A stretch of DNA of 64,000 nt from Vitrella brassicaformis CCMP3155 (taxonomy: Eukaryota > Protista > Chromerida). Both the position numbers and the translations under genes were made by a program. The notes under the pieces were generated by a model, which worked only from the letters and a program-made list of their open reading frames with translations, made no database searches and was not told where the DNA came from. Location of the stretch: assembly GCA_001179505.1 (NCBI GenBank), contig CDMY01000314.1:61453-125452 (forward strand), written 5' to 3'. Within the stretch, counting starts at the first letter, position 1. Every line of letters begins with the position of its first letter. Of the stretch, positions 1 to 21,300 are shown piece by piece.

Positions 1-3000
1 CCTTGACTTGGACATTGCCTTCGGGCCTCTCTTCAGACTCCGACGGATTATCGTTCGCCAGGTCGGGGGGGGGGGGGGNNNNNNNNNNNNNNNNNNNNNN
101 NNNNNNNNNNNNNNNNNNNNNNNNNNNNNNNNNNNNNNNNNNNNNNNNNNNNNNNNNNNNNNNNNNNNNNNNNNNNNNNNNNNNNNNNNNNNNNNNNNNN
201 NNNNNNNNNNNNNNNNNNNNNNNNNNNNNNNNNNNNNNNNNNNNNNNNNNNNNNNNNNNNNNNNNNNNNNNNNNNNNNNNNNNNNNNNNNNNNNNNNNNN
301 NNNNNNNNNNNNNNNNNNNNNNNNNNNNNNNNNNNNNNNNNNNNNNNNNNNNNNNNNNNNNNNNNNNNNNNNNNNNNNGGGGGGGGGGGGTGTGTGTGAG
401 GGTCGGGTGCGCGACGCGGAATGGCTTCATTTCATTCCACATGTGTGTGTAAATGTGTGCAGGTGCTGGAGTGTCTGCAACTCGATCAGCTGTCTGAGGC
501 ACTGTCTAGGGGCGGCAGCAACAGGCCGCTGGAGGAAACGGCTGCCAGTCTGCACAGAGAGGCCAAGCTAATCAAGGGCGACGAGACGCGTCAGACACTC
601 TGCTCGCGCTACTTGTGGTACACAATGGTGTATGCCCTTGAAGCCATTGTCAGGCAGATAGAGGTCCGTTTCATGCACAAGCGCGTACACACTTATCTGC
701 AGGGCTGGCTGTCTGTCCTTACTCCGCCTGTCTGGCTGCCTCTATGCTGGTAGGCTGACGGTGTGGCTTTCGTCAGAACGATGCAAGACATCCGCCGCCG
801 CATACAAGATCAGGACTTTTCGGGCGCAGCTGACGCCATTCTGCCGCCCCTGCCGTTCGCAGGCGACAGAACGGCAGGCGACAACTTCAATGACTTTGCC
901 CGCCAGGTGGTGGTCGCTCTGGTGCAACAAGGGCCGCCCGACTTCTCATACCTGGAGCCTCATCTGCAGACATATATGACCGGCTTCGCCCCAAGCGACC
1001 GGCTTCTAGACCTACAATGGTTCTTCCGTCTCCATCAAGGTCCCCTGAAGTCGCCGTCGCAACACGACACAGAGGACTCTTTTTACTTCGAATGGCATGT
1101 GACGTATCGCGACTACTTGCACCAGTGCGGCAGCACGGCCGCCACGGGCGGTCGGCGGCACGGCAGCTTCACTGTGAGTGGCGCGCCGGTCATCAACGGC
1201 ACCTACCTGCTCCGCCCGACAGAGCAAGAGCAGGAGACGCTACTCTATATTCATCCGGAGGCTGTCGCGTATGTGGGCGAGGACCTGGCATTCGAGCGGC
1301 TGGTGTACCCGCAAGCGGATGGCAGCATGGGAGGCTTCTGGATCGCCTGCACTCCGGATTTTGGCGACACAATCGGGCCCCTCTGTGCCTTCGCCCCATT
1401 CAAGAATGACGCTGTGAGCGGCTATAATCCTCTGCTCAGCCACCCCGCTGCGGCCAACCCCGCCTTCGAGACCAGCGAGTGGTTCACTGCCGACCAAGAG
1501 GGACGCATCAGCAGACTGGATGGCGTCAAGATGTCTTCCACTCTCCCGCTGACCTTCGATGTCCCCCGATCCGTCATTCCAGGCGTATCGAAGGTGGAAG
1601 GCACGGTGGAGGTCGATGTGTATCCGCGGGCCGACACAGCTGAGCCGCTGGCGTGCGAGTCGCTGGATGACTACTACACCCATCATCTGGCCAAGCTGGA
1701 GGTCAGCAAGGGAGCCGCCTTTCCCATGGCCTTCTATCTCGACGCCAACGTCATGGAGCAGCTGCCCCGATCGGCACGGCACACGGAGCGGCTCACGGGT
1801 GCAGGCCAGTCACCTGCAGGTTATACATCCGTGAGCACCGCCGAGACCATGGTGATCAAGAGAGGAATGGTCCGCCTGGCGGAGGAGTACGTCACCAAAG
1901 CCTTTACCGAGTGGCCCTTTGCCGCCGTGGTTGCCCTGTTGGCGACCGGATGGGAGGCGGCAGGGGGGCTGGTGTGCGTCCTGCGGGCCGAGTCGAGGAC
2001 ACAGACATGTTCTCGGTGCGGCAAGCCGTGTGCGGGCAGCTCAGGGGGCCCCGTGGATACCATTCCTCTGGTGCACACGCTCACCTGTGATGACCTCATG
2101 GACGATGCCATGATCGAGGAACACAAAAAGTACATCCGCGGCGCCGGAGCGGAGCTGTGTGTGTGGGGCGCTGGTGGGAGACCGACGTGTGGTGCCTGCC
2201 AGCTGGATTGTGTCGAGTCGTTGGCGAAGGAGCCGTCGAGGTGAGGTGTGCGATATATGCAAACAGAAAGGCACCCACCCAGCCAGCCACGGACTCACAT
2301 ATGAATGAATGAATGGCCACTGTCATGTGTGTCTAGGCCTGCTACTCCGGCGGATGTGCTGGACGTTTTCTCACGCCTCATGTCGTCCCCTTCTGAGACG
2401 GAGGCAGTCCCCACGCCCCAACCCAAGAGCGCGTCGAGTAGCAGCACCCCCTCCCGAGCTTCCCCGGCTGCCCCTGGGAGCATCTTCCGCGGCATCTTCA
2501 CGCCCAAGGACAAGACGACCAAACCCAAACCGCCCAAATCGACGCCCTTCACTCCGCAGCCCAAGCCGACGTCCACCCAGCCACCTACCACCGCCCAGCA
2601 CCACCACACCATCACAGTTGAGTCCATTCGTTCGGCCTTTCCCGACATTGCCACCGTCAGGTCGGCCACAGAGGGCGACAAACAGCCCCCGAGTGAGACG
2701 CTGGCCGTCGTGAAGGCCTTCCTGCAGTGTAGGGGAGGGGCGACGGAGGGCGGCGGTGAGTCGAGTCAGTGTGATGCGACCCAGGAGCGGGAGACTTACC
2801 TGCGGGCCGTCAAGAAGTTCTTCATGGACCACCGCACAGCGCTGCAAAGGTCACCCAACAGAATGGGCATCTCAACCACTGGGTAATTTGAGTGTCATGC
2901 GCTGTTTGTGTGTGTGCAGCGATCCGTCGGCGGTGTTTCCGTTGGGTCCGCTGCGGCATGTGCGTGGCGAGTGGCTGCCCCAGTGGCACACGACATTCGT

Positions 3001-5155
3001 CAGTGAGCTCAGCAAAGGCCAGCAGCTCATGCAGAAGGAACTCGGGGCCGCCACTACCAGGGGCCCTACCGACGGCAACAAGTGAGCCGCAGGGAGGGGC
3101 AAGGGCAGTTATGGAATCGTACTGGATGGTCTCGTTTGTTTGTTTGGTGTCGTCTGATCGCTTCCCTTTCGCGCAGTGCGTCAGCCACGGCCATTGCGGC
3201 GGATGACATGGGCTCAGGTGAGTCGTCGCCCCTCCCGTCGCCCACCGCGCATCGCGTATCTCCACAGATGGCTGGAGAGGCGTTTCCCAGGTGAGACTCG
3301 TCCGTCCATCCATAGCCGCACAGCACACAGGAACACTTAGTTGTGCGCTGTATCTACATGCATGTTTTTGTCTGCAGTGTGATGCGCTTGCCGTATGGTG
3401 GACGCGCGAGCACTGGGGGCGCCCGTGATGCGGGCAAAGAGGTGGCAGACAAGTGTGCCAGACTGGAGAAGCAGCTCGCTACGGCAGAGGAACAAGTCAA
3501 GACGGCCGTGGACGCACACACAACGGAGAAGAATGAGCTCAACCAGAACATCGAACGACTCCAAGACGATGTCAAAAGGTGGTCCGACAGAGAGAGTGGG
3601 AGAGGGACGGAGGGAGGGAGCTGGTCGGGGTGCAATCCATTCCATATTCCTCTCTGTGTGGGAGGGAATGTGTGTGTGCAGGTTGACCGATGAGTTGTCG
3701 GCGTCGAAGAGAACGGCCAAGAAGGAGAGAAAGGCCGCCGATGCGCAGCGCAGCACACTCGAGGACCTCATCAAAGACAAAGACAAAGAAATCAAACAGG
3801 CGCAAAAGACGTGAGCGCACACCAGCACACACTGACACGCCCATTCACCATCCCTTGTGTCCCCCCCTCCCCATTTGGTGTGTGTGCAGTGCCGACGATC
3901 GCGTGCGTCGAGTGAGCCAGCAGGTGCGTGAGGAGGCCGACAAGGCCGCCAAGACACACATGGACACCGTCACCAAGCAGCACGAAGAGGAGCTGGACCG
4001 ACTGCGTGGCGAGCACCGGTCGGCCATTTTGGAGGTGAGGGCGCAGCACCGGACGGCCATCGAGCAGCGAGAGACAGAGGTGCGGTGCGAGGCTGAGAGG
4101 GCCCTGGGCGACATGACGCGCGAGAGGGATCAGCTGAGGCAACGACTGAGGGAAGAACGACTCAGGTGAGGGGAAGGAGAGGACATGCAATCCGCCGACA
4201 GCTGCTGTCATATCACTCCGTTGTGTGTTGTGTGTTGATGTGTGTGTGCAGGTCAGCTCGTGTAGATCAGGAGAAGGACACCGAGCTGCGTCGGCTGCGC
4301 GAGGCGGAGGCGCCGCTGAGGCGGGAGAACCTCATGCTCAAACAGCAGCTGTCGGCACAGCCACCACACAGGTCAGCAACCAACCACACACACACACATA
4401 CACATCAACAGCAGCTGTGCACACGCCGCCATATGTGGTGCAGTCGTCTCAGTGGGGATGGTGTGTCGTCGATGGAGCTGCCTTCGGTGCGTCAGCTGCT
4501 CGATGACCTCGTCTCGGAGCAGGGCCGTCTCACCCAGCTGCACCAGACCGCCATCGAGCGACAGATACAGCTACTCCACCACCCGCAGTCCAGCCATGCA
4601 TCCTCATCGTCGTCAGCAGCAGCAGCTGCAAATCCCCCAAACCACACCACCGCCCCCTCTGTGCCCCTCTCCCTCTCCATGGATGACGCCAATGCCTCAC
4701 CAGCGGCAGCAGCGGCCGGCGGCAGCAGCTCGGCCCAGAGAAATGCGCCGTGTGCTGCGTCATCGTCCAGCAGTGGTGGCGGTGGTGGTGGGTCGAGTGC
4801 GGCCAGGTGTTCTGTGTGTCTGGTCAACCCGACTAACGTCATCTTGCTGCCGTGCGGCCACAAGGTGAGTGAGTCGGGGGGGAGAGGGCAGCGCATCCAG
4901 GTGCATGTCTGTGTCGTGCGTGTGTGTGTGTGTGTCAGGTGGTGTGTCAGGATTGTTTTGAGAAGTGGATGGCCCCCATGCCGGCACAAGACAAACTCTG
5001 CCCCGAACACACGTACGTCAGTCAGCGAGCAGGGTCATTTGCCTCACTGAGACACGCAGCCAGGGCTGTCCATTGGGGTGTGTATGTGTCTGTGCTGTGT
5101 GCCATGCGTCAGGTGTCGCCAGCCCTACTTCGAGGTGAAATACGTTTTTTGAGTG
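1..5155 (+). CDS. Family A copy 1 (5' end outside window): multi-exon gene, uncharacterised N-terminal domain with two CxxC pairs + Pro/Ser/Thr-rich linker + coiled coil + C-terminal C3HC4 RING (putative E3 ligase)
   Basis: Exons join in frame through GT-AG introns (e.g. 62-462 across the gap, 664-753, 2241-2337). Spliced C-terminus CSVCLVNPTNVILLPCGHK|VVCQDCFEKWMAPMPAQDKLCPEHT|CRQPYFEVKYVFE* (stop 5153-5155) has the RING-HC Cys/His pattern. Heptad-rich exons at 3380-4370. Colinear with the inverted paralog at 55850-62583. Confidence 0.8.
79..378. other. Scaffold gap (300 N) inside an intron, flanked by poly-G on both sides
   Basis: N run with G homopolymers at 65-78 and 379-390. Confidence 0.95.
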
Positions 5156-5397
5156 AGTGAGCGGTGCGTTTGCGTATTCCATGAGTATGTGAGTGACATT
5201 TATGAGAAGAGGGAACGAATGTCGATGTGACGCAACGGGCGAGCGAGACATCCATGCGTTCACCGGTCCATACGCCGCAGTGTGCGTTAGGATGTAAGTG
5301 AGTGTGTAGAGTAGGTCGGTCGACCATGTGTGGGAGATATGTCCTATACACTATCGTGGACGCTCGAAGCTCGCAGATCTTCCGTTGAAAGCCGTTG

Positions 5398-7601
5398 ATG
5401 CTGTGTGATATGGAGCTGGCTGTGAAGCCTAGACACGCGGCTACATCGCCTCAGCTGGACAGAGAAGGAACGGTTCCCCAACCACGGCGACACTCCGAAG
5501 AGGCCAAACGGGCAATCCATGCCACAGCACCGCCGTCGGTGGATGGGGAGGCTCCGCAGCTGAGTGAGGTGCAGCGGCTGGTGGAGGGAGACCTTCACGC
5601 CCTCAGAGACGAATGGCCCCAGATGTACACACCGCGAGAAAGGCCATTCCCCATACCACCGGGCAGTTCCGTGTTTTCGTGTGGTTTCGTGTGTGTCAGG
5701 GGGCTGTCATGGGAGCGTGAGCCTCCCACAACGTCTCCAACGCTCGACAGCCAAGAAGAAGTCACGCAGCAGCCTGATGGCGATGCCCACGCAGAGCCCG
5801 GCCCGGCGGGTGATGACTCAGCGGTCTGGTTCTACGCATACAAGCTGACAATAGGTACACTCATCGCAATGACGATGGTGCCTCAGTCGGACGGGAGACG
5901 GTGCGTTGTGTGTTTGTGTGCAGCTGTGGCGCCGTTGTCCCTCTATTCTGTGAGTGGTCTTGTGCCGACATGGCACCGAGAGGGCACATCGCTGCCCTTT
6001 CACCTGCACTTCCAAATCAGACTCGTCTTCCCCACAGGCAGGCAGTCAGGCAGGCAGTCAGGGGAGCAGGGGAGGGAGGCGCATATGCAGTGGATGCCCT
6101 GGCTACTGTGATGTCTCTGCAGGATACCCAGACGTGCCATTTGGAGCGGTGTTCCTGTCGCCCATCTATCACCCGATATTCCATGAAGGCTACGTGTTCA
6201 ATTTCCCCTACGACACAACGATCCGCCAATTTGCTCGAGCCGTACCCTTGACTTGCCGAGAGGAATTGCCGTATGACTGTAAGTATCGATGCTGTTGGTT
6301 GCAGGTGTACGCTCAGCTCTTGCGCCCGACATGGGTCCCAACGCTTTCATTCCGCCGCCACACCAACGATCCCCTTCTATCCCTTATGGGCCTTTCAATC
6401 CGGTCCCCGACATCAGACATGGTGCCGTCATCAGAAGGGCCTCAAGACGAAAATCCAATAGCCCGATCCTCACTGGCAGAGGACGTCTCTGGCCGAGCAT
6501 CTCCGCCTCCTCCTGTCCCTCCCCCCGCAGGGCCGCTCCTTCTCCCGCCCCCCGTGGCTGCCAGCCGGGCGACGTCGATGCAGGGGGCAGGCGAGAAGGT
6601 GCCGCAGAGGGCGAATGCCGCTCTGGATCGGTACATGCATCTCGCGGGTCCGGCAGAGGAGGGGCTGACGACGGATCAGGAGGGCAAGGAGCAGGAGGAT
6701 CCGTACTGGTGGATGTCGGAGCCTCTGATGACTGCTGCGGATGCCAGACACAGGTTAGGTGCGCGGGCGAGTAGGTGGGAGACAGACAGACACGAGATCA
6801 ACAGCATTAGTGAGGGGGTCTGGTGTGCATGTGTGTGGGTCAGGTATGCGACTCCCCTGCCTCCTTTCGGCGCTCCGTGGCGTCGGGCTGCTCTCAATTC
6901 CCTCAAGCTGCCCCTCACTGAGCTGACGGGTCCAAACGGTGTCAGAGAGAAAAGGTCGTCGTCGGCCAGCAGCCAGTCGGCCGTCAAGCGGAGGTCCCGC
7001 GTGGTCCAGATACTGCCGCACGACCAAGGCTTCTCCGTGCAGATCCTCCATGTGAGCAGACGGGAGATGTCTCTCTCTGTTGATATCTCATTGATTGACT
7101 TGTCCCTTGTCCTTGGTCATTCAGAGGAAGACAGACGATTCGCTTGACGAGAACGAGATGGACTCTGGCATGACCCCCGAAGTGGACGAGGCGACTAAGC
7201 GACTGCGGACTCTTGTCGACACCCTTAACTGGCTCGACAGCACCGAGCCCGACCTGCCGCCCCTCCAGACCCTCAAGCAGAAGAGACTCATCAACGACAT
7301 CGCCGCGTACGCAGAGACCAAAGCCAAGGACGCCAAGCGACGGAGTCAGAGTGCTGGTGGCAGCAGGGCCTCCAGCAAGGAGAGGCCGTCTGCGGCAGGC
7401 AAGGAGACCCCTTCGCCGATGCGTGAGTTCCTCATGTCAGAGGGTCTCATGCCCGGAATTCAGCACCGGAGACAGCCGACGGCGCGCGAGCGGCATGATC
7501 CGTGGGTGAGGCGACGGTCGAGATGGGATGGGCGGGGCGTGGACAAGGAGGCCGCCATGCTGCTCGTCGGGGAAGCGAAAGCGAAAACGAGTGCCAAGTG
7601 A
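5398..7601 (+). CDS. UBC-fold protein, probably a catalytically inactive E2 variant (UEV/RWD-like), with a low-complexity C-terminal region
   Basis: RLVEGDLHALRDEWPQ|GLSWE resembles E2 helix 1. Spliced FQIRLVFPTG|YPDVPFGAVFLSPIYHPIFHEG (intron 6038-6122, GC donor) matches the E2 motif F-x-L-x-I-x-FP-x-x-YP-x-x-P-x-V-x-F-x-x-x-IYHPN, but HPN is HPI and no catalytic Cys follows. Gene ends are approximate. Confidence 0.6.
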
Positions 7602-13727: not shown

Positions 13728-16700
13728 ATGGACAAGCAGTCGATGCTGGTGGGAGACGGTCGACAGCAGCCCGCTGACACGGATTACCAACCCCCTGAAG
13801 CCTCATCTCTTATTCCTGCCAGCCTCAGTGAGACCGCAGATCAGCCGGAGAACAGGCGACACGCAAGACTTTTGTTTGTGGATGCTGTTTGTCTGTCTGT
13901 GCAGCTCATGGTTGTGTGGATCCATCAGCAGAGATTCACGAGAAAGGGCAGCAGACGCAGCAAGACCACAGAAACCATCACGGCGCAGCAGACTCTCCCC
14001 TGTCGGCGCCAATTTGGCCGGCACCGTTGCCTCCGTCTGGCTTATCGTGGGGCAAAGGGAAGCGATCCAAGCCTCCTGCCACTACATTGATGGTGGCCAA
14101 AAAGGCTCGCAGTGCTTCAAAGTGAGAGCGATAAGGGAGAGGGTTGACGGATGGATGGCGGCTGATGGAATGTCTCATCATGCCTGTGCATGTGCTGTTT
14201 TGTCAGTGCTGGTCACATGAAGCCATCCATGCGCAGCAGCCTTGCAAACCATCCACTTCATCCACCGCAGCAACTCATCAAGAAGGAAGGAGTAGGCGCA
14301 CACACGATGGCACGGTCCTTCACCGTATGCGGCTGCATGCTTGGTGCAGAAAATGGACCGTCAATTGTCGCAGCAGCTGAGCAGCCCGCCCGTTGTTTGC
14401 CTGTTTGGAGCGTCACAGTTCTGCGTCCACCCTCAATGTGACAGCAAGGAGGGGCCACCATGGACGACCAGTTGTCTTTCTTTGCTCTCCTTCCTTCTGA
14501 TCAGGCATCCTCAACTCATCTTCGAGTCATGTCAAGGTACGTGTCAATCAGACTTGACCCGTCGACTTGACTGTGGTGTTTCGTGCAGATGGAGGTTGGC
14601 CACCTCCCGGTAGGTGGGCGTCCCCCTGGTCCGTCCTCTCAACTGAAGTCGCCCGTCGACGTCTTGCCACGGGCTGGTCTCACCAACCTGCCACATCAGC
14701 AGCTGATGCCGTTGATCAAGCAGGAAGAGGTACGCACTCACAGAGAGTGCCATACATCGCTGATATAATGGGCCCATCTCTGTTGCAGGCGATGGACGAT
14801 GAGCCGTCGCAGGCTGGACGGCCGAGCAACCTGCCCACCTCTGGCGCGTCTGGCGCGTCGCATTTTTGTCTCTCTCCTCCAAGTAAGGCATCCCTCCACA
14901 AGCACATTGGCACAATCAGCAGACGGGGAGGGGTGGAAACGGACGATTCATCCTCTGTGTCTTTGTGTCTGTTCGTTACGCCTCAGGCATCATCAAGGCG
15001 CTGCGGGACAACTGGGACAGGTGTGACCTCGACCGCCCCCGATCCACCACTTCCGTCGACCCCTGTGACTTGAGCACGCCACCCGAGGCGCGTCAAGTGT
15101 GGCTCAAGCCCAACGGTGAGTGGCTGCCCCGCGGCTGTGACATCGCCCTGCTGCCCGCGGGACAAGACGGTGGCCACGTGCGTCTTCCACGTCAATGGCG
15201 TCATGTGCGGCAAGCAGAACACATTCAGGAACATGGTCAACTCACACCTTCGCAAGACACACAAACTCCTTGCGAAGCCGAAAAAGGTGAGATAGCAAGT
15301 GTGTACATCCACAACCAGCCAGAGACGACAGATGAATGCTCTGTGGATGTTTTGCAGCGTGGCACGATCTCTCCGACGGAGCCAGAGACGGCGCCAGAGG
15401 TACTACATGGGTGTCACATTCAAGAAACCACCATGTGTCTGGTGCAGTTCATAGAAGACGGAGGACTGGAGGAGAGCGAGGAGACCACCACCGTTCAGCT
15501 CCCTCACGACCCAGGCACAGCACACAAGACACTGCCTGTGCAGTCTGGACGTATTGTCATCTCCTTGATTCAGATACTCATGCACTCGCCCCTGTTGCCC
15601 CACTTGAGGACGCCCACTCATATGCTGGCCCGACCCCCTTCCCACCTGTGCATCCGCAAGTCGAGACGTCTGTCAATGCAGGTCAGCGGACCAGGCTTCA
15701 CCTGCTTATCTGCATGAAGCCACGCTCACACATTCTTCGGCCTTTGTGTGGTGCAGGACTGCTGGCCTTCACTGACTTCGACCGTTTCTCTGACTTCCCA
15801 GCCCCACACGACCAGGTGAGTGCGCAAGCAAGGGAGGTAACGTTGGCTCTTGGTTGTTCTTTGTTAGATCCATGTGCTGGAAGAGGGTGATGGCGTGCAA
15901 GTGGCATGGTTAGGAGGCATGTGACAGCAACGTGGATCGGTGCGATGGTCATTTGTCATGTGTGCACAGGGATGTGTCCGACGGACCGAGCAGAAACATC
16001 GGATGGTTTGACGGAGAGGTGCTTCGAGTCGAGGAAACCCAGTTCCACGTAGGGAGACGGAAGTCACGCAGAGAGGCGACAGTGACACATGTACACGTGT
16101 CTCGGTGTACTTTTGCGGCTGTAAAAGGTGGAGTACTTCGTGTGCGGCAAGCGGTTGAAGTACTGGTTTGATTCCCGTATCTTCATCAACATGGAAGGTG
16201 CGACATGTGACGAGACCTGCATCCACATGAATGATGGTCCTCGACTGCGTATGCAGGTCTGCATTCCATCGAATCGCTTGTGCAGCACACACGGAGAGGC
16301 GCGGTCCGCAGGAGGCCTCAGCGATGGCTCACTCCACAGGCTGACCAAGCTTGGACATTGCAGAAAGGTGGAGAAGGTAAAGGGGTCTTGTCTCGATCTC
16401 ATTTCGATGTTTCTTGATACCAGGGGCTGTCGTCTCTGTTGTCCAAGAGGGCGATCGCCTTGAGCACCATGACGCCGTTGTGCGTGAATGCTGGTTTTTT
16501 CCTGGGGGGTCTCGCAAGGTACTCGTACACGCGTGCAGGTAGCCATGCATCAGGTATTCGTATCCGTGTTCGGCTGCACAGGCCACGGTGCGGTATCTTG
16601 TCAGCGGTGAGGAGGAGTTGCTGCCCACGGAGGTATGTGCTCCAAGACGAAGCGTCCTATCGGAAACTTACTTGTGCTCTGTGTCTCCTTCTCCGCTGGT

Positions 16701-16790
16701 GCGATACAAGCTCGGGCTTTCGATGTCATCCAACGTGCAATCGACCACGGGATCCCTGCCTCACTCATTCAGACGATTCCCAAGTGAGCG
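13728..16790 (+). CDS. Module-C gene copy 1: low-complexity exons + module C (C2H2 finger out of frame after a 185-bp deletion) + two Tudor/Agenet-like domains; possible pseudogene or frame-rescued isoform
   Basis: Exon chain hand-spliced via introns 15287-15357, 15400-15447, 15682-15756, 15816-15867, 15909-15969, 16049-16127. It yields IHVLEEGDGVQVAWDVSDGPSRNIGWFDGEVLRVEETQFHVEYF and KGAVVSVVQEGDRLEHHDAVVRECWFFPGGSRK|ATVRYLVSGEEELLPTE (royal-family beta-barrel patterns). Start and end are approximate. Confidence 0.55.
14566..15286 (+). repeat. Module C, copy 1 (dispersed multi-exon repeat)
   Basis: Aligns with 63491-64000 starting inside an intron (cttgactgtggtgtttcgtgcag). 15001-15160 is identical to 19395-19554. 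Confidence 0.9.
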
Positions 16791-17499
16791 GATGGATCTG
16801 TCAAACGATTACTTGATTGCTTGCCTTCGTTTGGCTTCCATTTCGAAACTGACGACACTTGGCTGCAAGTTATTGGCAAGAAAGAGGAGGAATCGATTGA
16901 CTGACCGCGGCGGGCAGGTCGGGCAGCTCAGGGGAGAGAGACGCAGTCGAGAGGGGGAGGGGAAGTGCATGCAGTCGAGCGACGGGAAGGGCGACAAGTA
17001 GTGCCTTAGGGAGTGGGAGTGTGTCTCGGTAGTTTTTTACTACTTGTAGAGAGCCGGCTGCCTCTTTTTTGGCTGCCATGGCTGCTGAGTAGAGGGAGAA
17101 TTCTTCCGTTTTGTGGGTTGCTTCCATGCCTGGTTTGTGTAATCAGAGAGAGGTAGGCTTGTGCCCAGTGTGCGTAGGAGAGAAGAGCGAGAGCCGTCAT
17201 CAATTACGAGAGTGATAGAGATAGAGGGTGCGAATTTGTTGTTCATGTGTGCGTGAACGAGGGGCCACGGGGCCACATGCCTCTGCTCGCATTTTTCAGA
17301 CACCAACGCGCAGACTTGTACACGTATGAGATCATTTTTCCATGACACATGTGCACATGTGTATGGTGAAAGCATTGTCGGACATGCATATTGAGTCTCT
17401 GGTCGTTTCAGCAGATTCATGCATCCCATCCCTTCCATTCATACCACTGCAGAGCACTGTGCATTGGGAGAACCATCCCATGACGCATACATACATTCC

Positions 17500-18008
17500 T
17501 CATACTGCTCTCCCTCTATGCTAATGACCTGATCATTCGACAGCAGCAACACCTCCTCCTCACCCGCACATCCCTTGGCAGGGGCCATATACACCCGCAC
17601 GTTCTGACCAGCACAGTCGCTGGCAATCATGAGCTTGCCGAGGTCCACGATGAGAGTGACCACGATCGCCGGGCTGCCGGTCTTGCGGCTTTTGAGCTTC
17701 GCGAACCTTGTGGCTTTTCTCATGTCGTTGGTGACATAGATGCCGACCCCTCGCCATTGCAAGTCGTCATCAGCAGCACAAGACGGGTTAAATCCGACTG
17801 CACACACTCACAGGAGAACAAAGCTAATGAGCTGCAATAGCGGCATTGGAAGCTGGATACAGACCCTACCTGCCCGAATTCTGTCTGCCGAGGCTTTGTC
17901 CGTCCCGTGAAGCACTCTCCGATGTGATTGTGACGTCCCCGTTCCGTCACAGACATCGCATGGAGACACGCAGCTCTGATCGTTGACGACGCACATGGTG
18001 TGCCCCGC
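17500..18008 (-). CDS. Gig2/PARP-like ADP-ribosyltransferase catalytic domain (H-Y-E class), preceded by a CxxCxGxG motif; gene probably extends to about 17040 and 18300
   Basis: Splicing a 72-nt GT-AG intron (17798-17869) gives PCDVCDGTGTSQSHRRVLHGTDKASADRIRAVGFNPSCAADDDLQWRGVGIYVTNDMRKATRFAKLKSRKTGSPAIVVTLIVDLGKLMIASDCAGQNVRVYMAPAKGCAGEEEVLLLSNDQVISIE, with HGT, GxGIYxT, VxLGK and EEE motifs in ART order. Confidence 0.8.
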
Positions 18009-18399
18009 CTGACATGCGCACGCACATTCCTTTGTCTGTCTGTCTGTCACTTATTGACAATGCGTGAGCATGCTTTTGCCTGACCTCTGTCTGCTGTGGC
18101 ATCTCTTCTGTTGTTGCGCAAGTCGATAGGGTACTGATTGAGCAGTCATCATCCTGACGACACAACAGACAGAGAGCGACCAGAGGTGTGGTCTACACAG
18201 CAATCGTGCTGTTGCTCCATTCCATACATCTGGTATGTCACTCAGCCGCTCATCGCCAGTGATGTTGACGGCAGAATTCACCGACGAACGAGACCATACC
18301 TGCACACACCGCACTCGAACGAGATCACACGTGCATCACACCAAGTCCGTGTGCAGGTCCGCTCACCACAGATGGGGGGTCCTCTCGGTGGCTGCGTGT

Positions 18400-21300
18400 G
18401 GGCGTCTTGTGGATCTTGTTCGGCGGTCTCTCGTTGGTCAGTCGACTCTTAGACGGTGCAATCTGGATGACAGCAGGGACAATCAAATGCAACGCCCCTT
18501 CGCCATGGCTTACGCTCATCGTGTTGCAGCCCTCAGACCACCACTGCTCAGACAGCTGGTCAAGCACTTGGCCCTGCAATCAGAGGCAATGCCCCTTCGC
18601 GAAGAGATGAGTGAGCTCTCTTTGCTTGCTTACGGTCATGGTGTTGGGCCACGAGTGCTGCGATTGCTGGTCGAGCGGCTGATTGCTGTCACGGCTGATG
18701 AATCCATCTGCCATTCGCACCGCAGCTGCCTCGTCAACCACTTGGTCCTGCAAGACACCACTTGGTCCATCTATGCGTGTCCTGACCCAGAGGGGCGTGG
18801 GCAAGGGGTGGGGGTGGGGGGGATGCATTGGGGGCGCTGGAGAAGGGAGAGGAGCCGGTATGACAACCTGCTCAGTGGCTGCTGACGGCTGAGACTGCTG
18901 ATTGCTGTCACCAGTGTGTGTTACGCCGTCGTGTCTCACTGCTATCGCCAACCCGACGGCGCTTGGAGGAGAGGCGGCAGCAGAAGACATGGGTCGCCCT
19001 GGCTGGTCGGTGAGGGGAATGGGCACGGAATGGGGGTGAGGTGGGTGGGNNNNNNNNNNNNNNNNNNNNNNNNNNNNNNNNNNNNNNNNNNNNNNNNNNN
19101 NNNNNNNNNNNNNNNNNNNNNNNNNNNNNNNNNNNNNNNNNNNNNNNNNNNNNNNNNNNNNNNNNNNNNNNNNNNNNNNNNNNNNNNNNNNNNNNNNNNN
19201 NNNNNNNNNNNNNNNNNNNNNNNNNNNNNNNNNNNNNNNNNNNNNNNNNNNNNNNNNNNNNNNNNNNNNNNNNNNNNNNNNNNNNNNNNNNNNNNNNNNN
19301 NNNNNNNNNNNNNNNNNNNNNNNNNNNNNNNNNNNNNNNNNNNNNNNNNTGTGTCTGCGTGTCTGTTCCTAACGCCTCAGGCATCATCGACGCGCTGCGG
19401 GACAACTGGGACAGGTGTGACCTCGACCGCCCCCGATCCACCACTTCCGTCGACCCCTGTGACTTGAGCACGCCACCCGAGGCGCGTCAAGTGTGGCTCA
19501 AGCCCAACGGTGAGTGGCTGCCCCGCGGCTGTGACATCGCCCTGCTGCCCGCGGTCATCGATGAGGACAGGCGCAACACGCCCCTGAGGAACTTCTTTCG
19601 GAAGCAGTTCTTCCGTCCCCCGGTCGAGCGGCAGATGGTTTCTTCCGGCGAGCCCGTGAAAGGGAGCTGCGCCTTGGTCTACTACGATGGAGTGTTGCAG
19701 CTGACCGTCCCCTATGTCCCTATTGGGTGCAGCCCGCAGGACAAGACGGTGGCCACGTGCCTCTACTGCGCCAATGGCGTCATGTGCGGCAAGCAGACCA
19801 CCTACAGGAACATCGTCAACTCACACCTGGGACTCACGCACGGGCTCTCCAAGAAAGGGAAACGAAGGACAAGGGAAAAGAAGAAACGAGCGGGCCCCCA
19901 TGTGAGACAGATCGAGGGCAACACATCACCTAACGACCCGACCGCTGCACACACGCGCATGTTTGTGTGTGTTTGTGTGTGCGTGTGTGCCGGCGCAGAG
20001 GCCCAGGAAGTCGGTGGTTGCGAGAGATTCGTCGGATGATGACTTTGACGACTCGCCAGTGGCCAAGCCAGGCGGACTGGCCGGTGCCCGCCGTGACCCA
20101 CCCCCGTTGCTTGATGCCGGTAAGCACACAGATCGATCCCCAACGCCACTCCTCACACTTCAGTCATGTCATGCACTCTTCCCTGGTCGGTCTGTAATCA
20201 GGTGACGATGCTGACCATGAGCTGCCGGCAATGCCCATTTGTCCCTCCACCCCCCGCGCCCCCCCAGTGGCATCGCGCGCCGCCCCTCACCCCCGATGTG
20301 ACCGGACAGAGGTTGCTGTCATCGGCCAAGGCGACACGTGCGACATGGCGTCACTTACGGACGAGGCAGTCAGCATTCGAGGCCTGCAGAACTGGATGCA
20401 CGCCCTGGCGATGCTCCACCGCTCCCATCGGCTGACGCCGGGCACCGGCCGGTCGCCCTTGCTGCTGCGGGGCGGCAGCGATGCGGCCGATCTGCATGTC
20501 TTGTTTCGGCACCCGCTGCTGAGGGTCAGTGACGTGGTGTTGCAGCTGCGGGCCATCGACGTTGAGACGGGAGAGTGGCTGGCAGCGCCGCATGGCACGG
20601 CCGTGTCGATGGTGGTGCGTAGGGACCGGAAGAAGCTGCTGCCGCTTCAGCTGAGTGCCGTTTCTGAAGAGGTGATGACCATCTCACCACCTACACCCCC
20701 CATGAAGGACCAGAGGGGCCACCACATCCCCTACCAGATCGTGGCGGTCAGGGCGCAACCCGACGGGGACACTGCTGCCCCAGAGGCGGTGTCGCGTCTG
20801 ATCTTCTTCACCGACGACGGGCCGCCTGATTCTTGGCCGCCCATCTCCCTGGCTGAGCTCAGCCTGCCTGCCAGCAGCTGCCCTTTCACCATCGGCCCGA
20901 GAGGGCTGTGGCAGCCGACCAAGAGCGGACTCTACCCGATCGCGACAACGCTCCGGCTCCCGGACATCGTCAACACACGGGATCTGCCCGCTTCCCTCAA
21001 GCGGACTGTCTCCCCGGGGCAGAGGTGTCCGGGCGGATTCAAGATTGTCGGAAATGTCGCTGTTTGCGACCTGGACTTGGGTCAGGTGGTGTGGAGCATC
21101 CAAGGGCGGCTGAGGGAGGCATCAGAGATGCCCATGGTGGATGTGCTCGCAGTCACCCACACCAATACTGACAGGTGGCCGGGGGTGCGTGACGTGCCGC
21201 TGCGGGAAATGTCGGACGCGCACCTCCTCTACTCGGCCCTCACAGCCAGCTTCCGCCACTGGCCCCTCGCGGCTCCCAACTTCATCCTCGATCCTGAAGG

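Follow-up and report, generated by a model that had tools for sequence, protein, structure and literature searches.

An expressed Vitrella brassicaformis gene encoding a protein with two Tc5/CENP-B-type HTH modules and a divergent Gig2-like ADP-ribosyltransferase domain

Exon structure of an expressed minus-strand gene

Positions 17439-19002 on the minus strand of the window, by which we mean the whole stretch of 64,000 nucleotides analyzed here, contain the 3' half of a Vitrella brassicaformis CCMP3155 (Alveolata) gene that is expressed and has multiple exons. An earlier prediction from the DNA letters had placed a compact, stand-alone ADP-ribosyltransferase (ART) domain at 17500-18008, assembled by one splice. 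The peptide strings that it quoted are present, on the minus strand, while the coding sequence runs on beyond 17500 to a stop codon at 17439-17441. The features of the gene within the window are as follows.

16882-17438, minus strand: 3' UTR, a minimum extent since the contigs are blind to the true RNA end
17439-17441, minus strand: stop codon, ending the coding sequence of E7
17442-17797, minus strand: last coding exon E7, a split Val codon followed by 118 codons, second part of the ART domain from GFNPS... onward
17798-17869, minus strand: intron of 72 nt, GT..AG, phase 1, splitting the Val codon
17870-18008, minus strand: internal exon E6, Cys4 knuckle and ART H-G-T motif
18085-18153, minus strand: exon E5, 23 codons, linker; spliced contigs and translation match
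18228-18299, minus strand: exon E4, 24 codons, linker; spliced contigs and translation match
18367-18462, minus strand: exon E3, 32 codons, linker; spliced contigs and translation match
18514-18573, minus strand: exon E2, 20 codons, linker, a partial repeat of the end of E1
18634-19002, minus strand: exon E1 (window part), 123 codons, Pro/Ser/Gln-rich linker
18009-18084, 18154-18227, 18300-18366, 18463-18513 and 18574-18633, minus strand: five further introns, GT..AG, from spliced contigs
19050-19349: scaffold gap of 300 N, inside an intron of the ART gene

In order to establish the exon structure, contigs of four public runs (X1, X2, X7 and X3) were compared with window positions 15000-19030. 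Contigs of X1, X2 and X7, three runs from two studies, skip 17798-17869 exactly, whereas the DNA run X3 gives a single contig straight through 15131-18827 with this intron included; X1, X2 and X7 therefore carry spliced, RNA-derived sequence and the intron is indeed removed, as had been proposed. A 70-nt intron lies at the same codon in the paralog on scaffold C561, whose deposited 168-aa product, P0001, uses the same join; the paralog on C409 has no intron there, its H and GF motifs being encoded in a single continuous frame. Spliced contigs from the three runs support six minus-strand GT..AG introns in all, RNA-derived contigs cover E7, and the X2 contig is unbroken from 16882 to 17797. The exons upstream of E6 measure 69, 72, 96, 60 and 369 nt, are all of phase 0 and are open in the in-phase frame, with stops in most other frames. 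Because these five exons are spliced on in the same contigs, exon 17870-18008 is an internal exon and not the first one. Every exon in the window, E7 among them, translates to an exact substring of the deposited proteins P0074, P0075, P0002 and P0076. Searches and folds of the spliced product used deposited P0074, P0075 and P0002, for which identity to the window translation was confirmed exon by exon.

The form originally predicted, a stand-alone ART of ∼160 aa starting at the ATG at 17994-17996, with the upstream exons serving as 5' UTR or belonging to a separate transcript, has a precedent in P0001, a genuinely stand-alone protein whose ATG is closely preceded by an in-frame stop, and an ATG is found at the corresponding site in the window. 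We nonetheless regard it as quite improbable. In each of the three spliced contigs E6 is joined at 18008 to exons lying upstream; these five exons have lengths divisible by three and only the in-phase frame open, leaving more than 230 stop-free codons 5' of the proposed start; four deposited ORFs read through; and no contig begins near 18008.

The linker exons carry some history of their own. At window 18514-18700 (minus strand) the end of E1, its intron and E2 make up an internal direct repeat, in which the peptide ...PLDQQSQHSWPNTMT resembles ...VLDQLSEQWWSEGCNTMS, so that the linker grew by a duplicated exon-intron unit. A variant contig of run X7 has 30 other letters in place of window 18457-18659 (depth 28.5) and may be a unitig switching to a paralogous linker. 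At 15131-16700 lies a convergent plus-strand gene with at least nine introns, all short (48-79 nt); of the joints reported for it, the one from 15511 to 15571 is non-canonical (CA..TT). The X1 and X7 RNA contigs traverse both convergent genes, and the two 3' ends thus overlap.

The scaffold gap and the full-length product

The last 475 bases of scaffold C22 (C22:207963-208437) are identical (100%) to window 19049-18575, and C22 and the window therefore represent one locus. A search of the whole assembly (72.7 Mb, 1064 contigs), for which the N-terminal portion of the corresponding database protein was the query, located the missing 5' exons, comprising two HTH_Tnp_Tc5 modules and the start codon, at C22:205770-207880. 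Taken together with the 475-base overlap, these exons place the 300-N gap within an intron of the ART gene, and C22 and C314, the scaffold of the window, should abut at the gap. Immediately upstream of ∼19002 the X1 contig contains 30 letters, absent from the window, that encode ...WISAFRRRYQ and are located on C22. There the donor site CAGCAG/GTAGG is found, plus two in-frame acceptors: the first gives a 154-nt intron ending at window 19003, and the second, upstream beyond 19049, gives an intron of ∼74 nt and adds 27 codons, as in the P0075 isoform. The X7 contig continues past 19030, and the X1 and X7 contigs correspond to the two acceptor isoforms. The product is thus 882 or 909 aa in length, as set by acceptor choice, and the ART is a C-terminal domain rather than the stand-alone, compact protein that had been proposed.

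The gene is already public. Its spliced product, which had been thought unannotatable, is deposited as P0074 (291 aa; NCBI CEM01961.1, UniProt A0A0G4ETM3, 'PARP catalytic domain-containing protein', on C314), with further deposited forms P0076 (383 aa), P0002 (755 aa, partial) and P0075 (909 aa, an MMETSP transcript ORF starting with Met). The CEM01961.1 model is cut short by the scaffold gap; the actual protein is ∼3 times longer and includes putative DNA-binding modules. Near the gap we also note a 205-base segment repeated at 97% identity at window 14956-15160 and 19350-19554, the second copy beginning where the N gap ends; at 15131-15160 the contigs of every run break, and the duplicate may be a repeat, mis-scaffolded or a haplotype duplicate.

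From its N-terminus P0075 contains two Tc5/CENP-B-type HTH modules, a low-complexity linker of ∼250 aa rich in Pro, Ser and Gln, a Cys4 knuckle and the C-terminal ART domain. Both HTH modules are encoded on C22, outside the window, and score 22.3 and 26.7 bits against HTH_Tnp_Tc5 (PF03221; cut-off 22.2), the full-length protein scoring 39.8-40.6 bits; DNA binding by these modules is putative, as suggested by a Pfam match just over threshold. The ∼250-residue Pro/Ser/Gln-rich stretch matched no family. At least 46 matches to the HTH module, which is of the psq/Tc5 type, at 40-60% identity, occur in the genome (for example on C268, C646, C718 and C908), the copies often ending in ...RYQQ just before a GT donor, whereas the DDE_1 transposase has one match only in the whole genome. 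On this ratio the HTH module is a module of host genes and not part of active pogo elements, and an active pogo transposon was rejected as an explanation. The pattern looks like a large host-gene family that shares a pogo-derived DNA-binding head. The likeness to the DNA-binding domain of CENP-B and the pogo (Tc5) transposases extends to both N-terminal modules, each above the cut-off; the difference is that the Vitrella protein lacks a DDE transposase domain and that its module is multi-copy in host genes.

With so many HTH copies in the genome, and with the link to the ART exons spanning a scaffold gap, one might suppose that a chimeric assembly has joined a transposon-derived HTH repeat to an unrelated ART gene. 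We consider such an artefact very improbable. C22 and the window are one locus by their shared 475 bases, a canonical GT donor and two in-frame AG acceptors are present in the genomic DNA, and the scarcity of DDE_1 speaks against active pogo copies. The HTH-ART junction is moreover found in independent assemblies, namely MMETSP P0075, JGI P0002 and the Logan contig of X1. Contigs are not proof of one RNA molecule containing HTH and ART exons, but P0075 and P0002 each come from a transcript assembly as a single ORF. For P0077, another ART paralog, an HTH module likewise lies upstream on the same strand.

The ART domain and its relatives

Read on the minus strand from 18008 to 17870, E6 encodes four Cys ending in CDVCDGTG, followed by RRVLHGTDKASADRIRA; from 17795 downward E7 encodes GFNPS...GVGIYVTNDMRKATRFA...VDLGK...GEEEVLL. 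The elements of the domain are located as follows.

17937-17993, minus strand: Cys4 knuckle, C-x6-C-x3-C-x2-C, ending in CDVCDGTG
17937-17960, minus strand: CDVCDGTG, a DnaJ-like CxxCxGxG
17907-17909, minus strand: codon of the triad His, H34 of the domain and H160 of P0074; column H in 58 of 60 rows
17736-17738, minus strand: codon of the triad Tyr, Y67, in GVGIYV; column Y in 58 of 60 rows
17553-17558, minus strand: Glu-Glu codons; E127 column E in 43 and E128 column E in 55 of 60 rows
approximately 17590-17605, minus strand: site of a missing block of 14-16 residues (Cys/His loop, near-invariant Trp, GYDS)

An alignment of 60 rows, with the window domain at its head, has among its near-invariant columns H34-G-T, G48-F, G63-x-G-x-Y67, K74-A75, V97, G100 and E128. 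The H-Y-E triad is therefore intact as H34, Y67 and E128, in agreement with the original prediction, E128 being the likely catalytic Glu by its presumed placement relative to the E-x-V-V strand of PARPs. The domain is a minimal (∼135 aa) PARP-like ART of the Gig2 kind that has kept H, Y and E. The CxxCxGxG that had been noted ahead of the domain is also found, as CDVCDGTG, and belongs to a knuckle motif common to the protist-type relatives P0001, P0003, P0004, P0005, P0007 and P0008. The DnaJ central zinc-finger domain (PF00684) has four CxxCxGxG repeats forming two zinc centres; the window protein has one such repeat and two more Cys and gives no Pfam match to it, whereas relative P0007 has four CxxCxGxG repeats and relative P0009 a sub-threshold PF00684 match.

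Kinship to Gig2 is supported by sequence and profile comparisons. Against a profile of 14 vertebrate Gig2 units the window domain gives an hhalign probability of 97.2% with E 3.1e-11 over 65 columns, and its sister paralog P0001 gives E 4.6e-17 over 94 columns. A phmmer search with P0001 against 1.84 billion representatives returned 73 matches at E ≤1e-3. Those with names, which come from teleosts, sharks and rays, amphibians and lampreys, are either Gig2 genes or uncharacterised; they include a cluster (of P0006) that contains 'GCRV-induced gene 2e protein' of Astyanax, at E 4.6e-29 over four tandem units, and 'GCRV-induced gene 2o' of Mustelus. With exon E7 as query, a word search covering matches of 0.55-1.75 times the query length found paralog P0001 only. 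The PARP catalytic family PF00644 is matched by 57 of the 60 alignment rows, and P0001 reaches 27.3 bits against a gathering threshold of 26.7, while the window domain alone stays below it at 13.8 bits (E 0.042), and Pfam searches with each of the two ART exons separately gave nothing relevant. The profile check proposed at the outset thus turned out positive for Gig2 and negative for PF00644. Searched against the PDB, the family profile finds the catalytic domains of PARP12 (E 3.9e-8), PARP10, PARP4, PARP14/15 and PARP1.

Structure prediction agrees with these results. An AlphaFold model computed on the alignment has a mean pLDDT of 72, with residues 29-100 and 128-145 above 90; it is of low confidence at the Cys knuckle and unreliable at residues 101-125 (pLDDT <55). 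A single-sequence run on P0001 gave a pLDDT of 38. All of the top 50 Foldseek matches to the model are ART domains, 49 of them PARPs or Tpt1, plus APE0204, with probability ∼1 but a best E of only 2.6e-3; on re-alignment with VIA-align APE0204 covers the same residues as Aeropyrum Tpt1. VIA-align Z scores range from 7.6 to 8.8, the best being Tpt1 (Z 8.8, 2.4 Å, 87 residues), with tankyrase and PARP2 at 8.0 over 117-123 residues. The Z scores are middling in absolute terms, but the list is uniform and agrees with the sequence results, so that the objection of a non-ART fold fails. The predicted fold is accordingly that of an ART, with its split beta-sheet, the model matching only ART folds. 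Both profile and model evidence thus point, as had been foreseen, to a PARP-related ART of the Gig2 kind in an alveolate.

It is instructive to compare the domain with its better known relatives. The genes called Gig2 (GCRV-induced gene 2) are interferon-stimulated genes of fish, amphibians and lampreys, and the W...GYD[ST]...EE C-terminal half has been described as typical of them (PMC3617106). The vertebrate unit, like that of Vitrella, is a minimal PARP-like domain of ∼135 aa with YHGT, GF-x-S, G-x-G-V-Y-V, K-A and V-x-x-G-K motifs and EE ahead of the last strands, in a family prone to tandem duplication and domain shuffling. Unlike the vertebrate units, in which it is invariant, the window copy lacks the W...GYD[ST] block, so that alignment is confined to its first half; a Cys4/CxxCxGxG knuckle, found in none of the vertebrate units, is present, and the domain forms the C-terminus of a long HTH-bearing protein on a separate protist-type branch. 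To our knowledge Vitrella has no interferon system, and none is involved here. PARPs (PF00644), especially the mono-ARTs PARP10, PARP12, PARP14 and PARP15, share the ART fold and an NAD+ site of the H-Y-E type. The window domain is, however, ∼60 residues shorter and without the helical regulatory domain, and the conserved Lys is followed by Ala throughout the Gig2-like family where PARPs have Ser. The RNA 2'-phosphotransferase Tpt1/KptA is the best structural match to the window model and likewise a minimal ART core. Tpt1 has a site of the H-H-h type and an N-terminal winged-helix RNA-binding lobe, whereas the window domain has an H-Y-E triad and is akin in sequence to PARP and Gig2 rather than Tpt1.

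The family is large in Vitrella. A profile search of the assembly gave 21 matches at ∼17 loci, so that it occupies at least 17 loci, and the unit of knuckle plus ART is a cassette shuffled onto different heads: HTH modules in the gene described here, two TLDc domains in P0077 (994 aa, C646), which lie ahead of the same knuckle and ART, and none in P0001. For the P0077 gene, at 1491-6238 (minus strand) of locus L021 (C646:4500-14400), an HTH_Tnp_Tc5 module is observed 680 bp upstream of the annotated start on the same strand, and P0077 shares linker motifs with the window protein; its public model may therefore also miss N-terminal HTH exons. In relatives elsewhere the unit is fused to ubiquitin, ankyrin repeats or DnaJ-like CxxCxGxG repeats.

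In a phylogenetic tree the window copy is sister to P0001 (SH-aLRT 99) inside a Vitrella/protist-type group, and the four Vitrella copies cluster with sequences that bear CxxCxGxG, separate from every named vertebrate unit; the tree is midpoint-rooted only and its deep branches are weak. As the relatives with names are all non-amniote vertebrates, one could imagine that the gene was recently acquired from a vertebrate by horizontal transfer, or that it stems from contaminating fish DNA. This we hold to be exceedingly improbable given the placement of the four copies, the Vitrella-type short introns of 51-76 nt and the number of family loci in the genome, and Gig2-like ESTs have been listed from the dinoflagellate Karenia brevis, the haptophyte Emiliania huxleyi and marine metagenomes (Zhang et al. 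2013, PMC3617106).

Divergence of the window copy and its possible function

From VDxGK to the EE strand, the two close paralogs and almost every relative contain a block made up of a Cys/His-rich loop, a near-invariant Trp and GYD[ST], the counterpart of ...GW...FYDS in PARP12. The window protein has none of it, although EE and the last strands are kept, and its hhalign alignment to the Gig2 profile stops at VDLGK whereas that of P0001 runs through the block. With Trp and GYDS missing, the window protein is a derived, incomplete member of the Gig2 family by descent and not a typical unit. It has also evolved faster than its sister. Compared with 58 outgroup rows, 473 differences are private to the window copy as against 106 for P0001 (∼4.5-fold), seven departures from strong consensus positions are private to it and none to P0001, and the end branches in the tree are 0.38 and 0, respectively. 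The window copy is the most degenerate of a multi-gene family. Between the window copy and the C561 paralog P0001 dN/dS is 0.26 with dS near 1, a value for the pair, which is under constraint as a whole, and not for the window lineage alone.

The lost loop and strand block and the accelerated evolution relative to the sister make catalytic competence uncertain, and we would put the chances that the window ART is catalytically active at about even. Of the original proposal of an active mono-ART, the intact triad has stood, whereas the missing W...GYDS block, the ∼4.5-fold excess of private substitutions and the PF00644 score of 13.8 bits weigh against it. In the papers on Gig2 that were consulted, the proteins are described as PARP-related or as ADP-ribosyltransferases by homology, and we found no enzymatic demonstration there for any Gig2 protein. 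The window ART may instead be a pseudo-enzyme that has kept the fold, and perhaps binding of NAD+ or ADP-ribose, and would serve a DNA-binding protein as a module for binding or scaffolding. Loss of a block conserved across the family, the seven private deviations from consensus, a branch that carries nearly all of the change since the duplication, the sub-threshold Pfam score and an alignment to the Gig2 profile limited to the first half all favor such a scenario. On the other hand H, Y and both Glu are kept, the gene is expressed and correctly spliced, the pair value of dN/dS speaks against free decay, and the lost block may be a loop and NVRVYM a substitute for the strand. We consider a pseudo-enzyme possible, but on the unlikely side.

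The reading that we favor, and hold to be probable as a whole, is that of an expressed HTH-HTH-linker-knuckle-ART protein that would, if active, carry out single ADP-ribose transfer while tethered to DNA or chromatin. The HTH modules would bring the protein to DNA or chromatin, and the ART domain would there transfer single ADP-ribose units from NAD+ to nearby targets, protein or possibly nucleic acid. With domain order as the sole basis for assigning a function, a DNA/chromatin-tethered mono-ADP-ribosyltransferase, or a catalytically weakened derivative of one, is most likely. The arrangement recalls the logic of PARP1, in that DNA-binding modules and an ART domain are combined in one polypeptide. 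The HTH modules and the zinc fingers of PARP1 are, however, unrelated folds, the Vitrella protein lacks WGR and BRCT domains, and there is no evidence for polymer synthesis by it.

A broader and rather doubtful suggestion is that Vitrella, and perhaps related protists, deploy a Gig2-type cassette on interchangeable targeting heads, with the HTH-headed form writing ADP-ribose at specific DNA sites. Such marks might be placed on chromatin or on DNA itself, for example in silencing mobile elements or foreign DNA. If so, Gig2-type enzymes would form a conflict module of ancient eukaryotic origin, older than the interferon system of vertebrates.

On present evidence the window gene is a divergent paralog of a known domain family, derived and with an unusual head. 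Its analysis corrects a public gene model and extends the non-vertebrate branch of the Gig2 ART family, which has received little study, by a chromerid alga with at least 17 family loci. If the HTH-ART protein is active, it would provide a simple model for DNA-tethered mono-ADP-ribosylation and for roles of Gig2-type proteins outside the interferon system.
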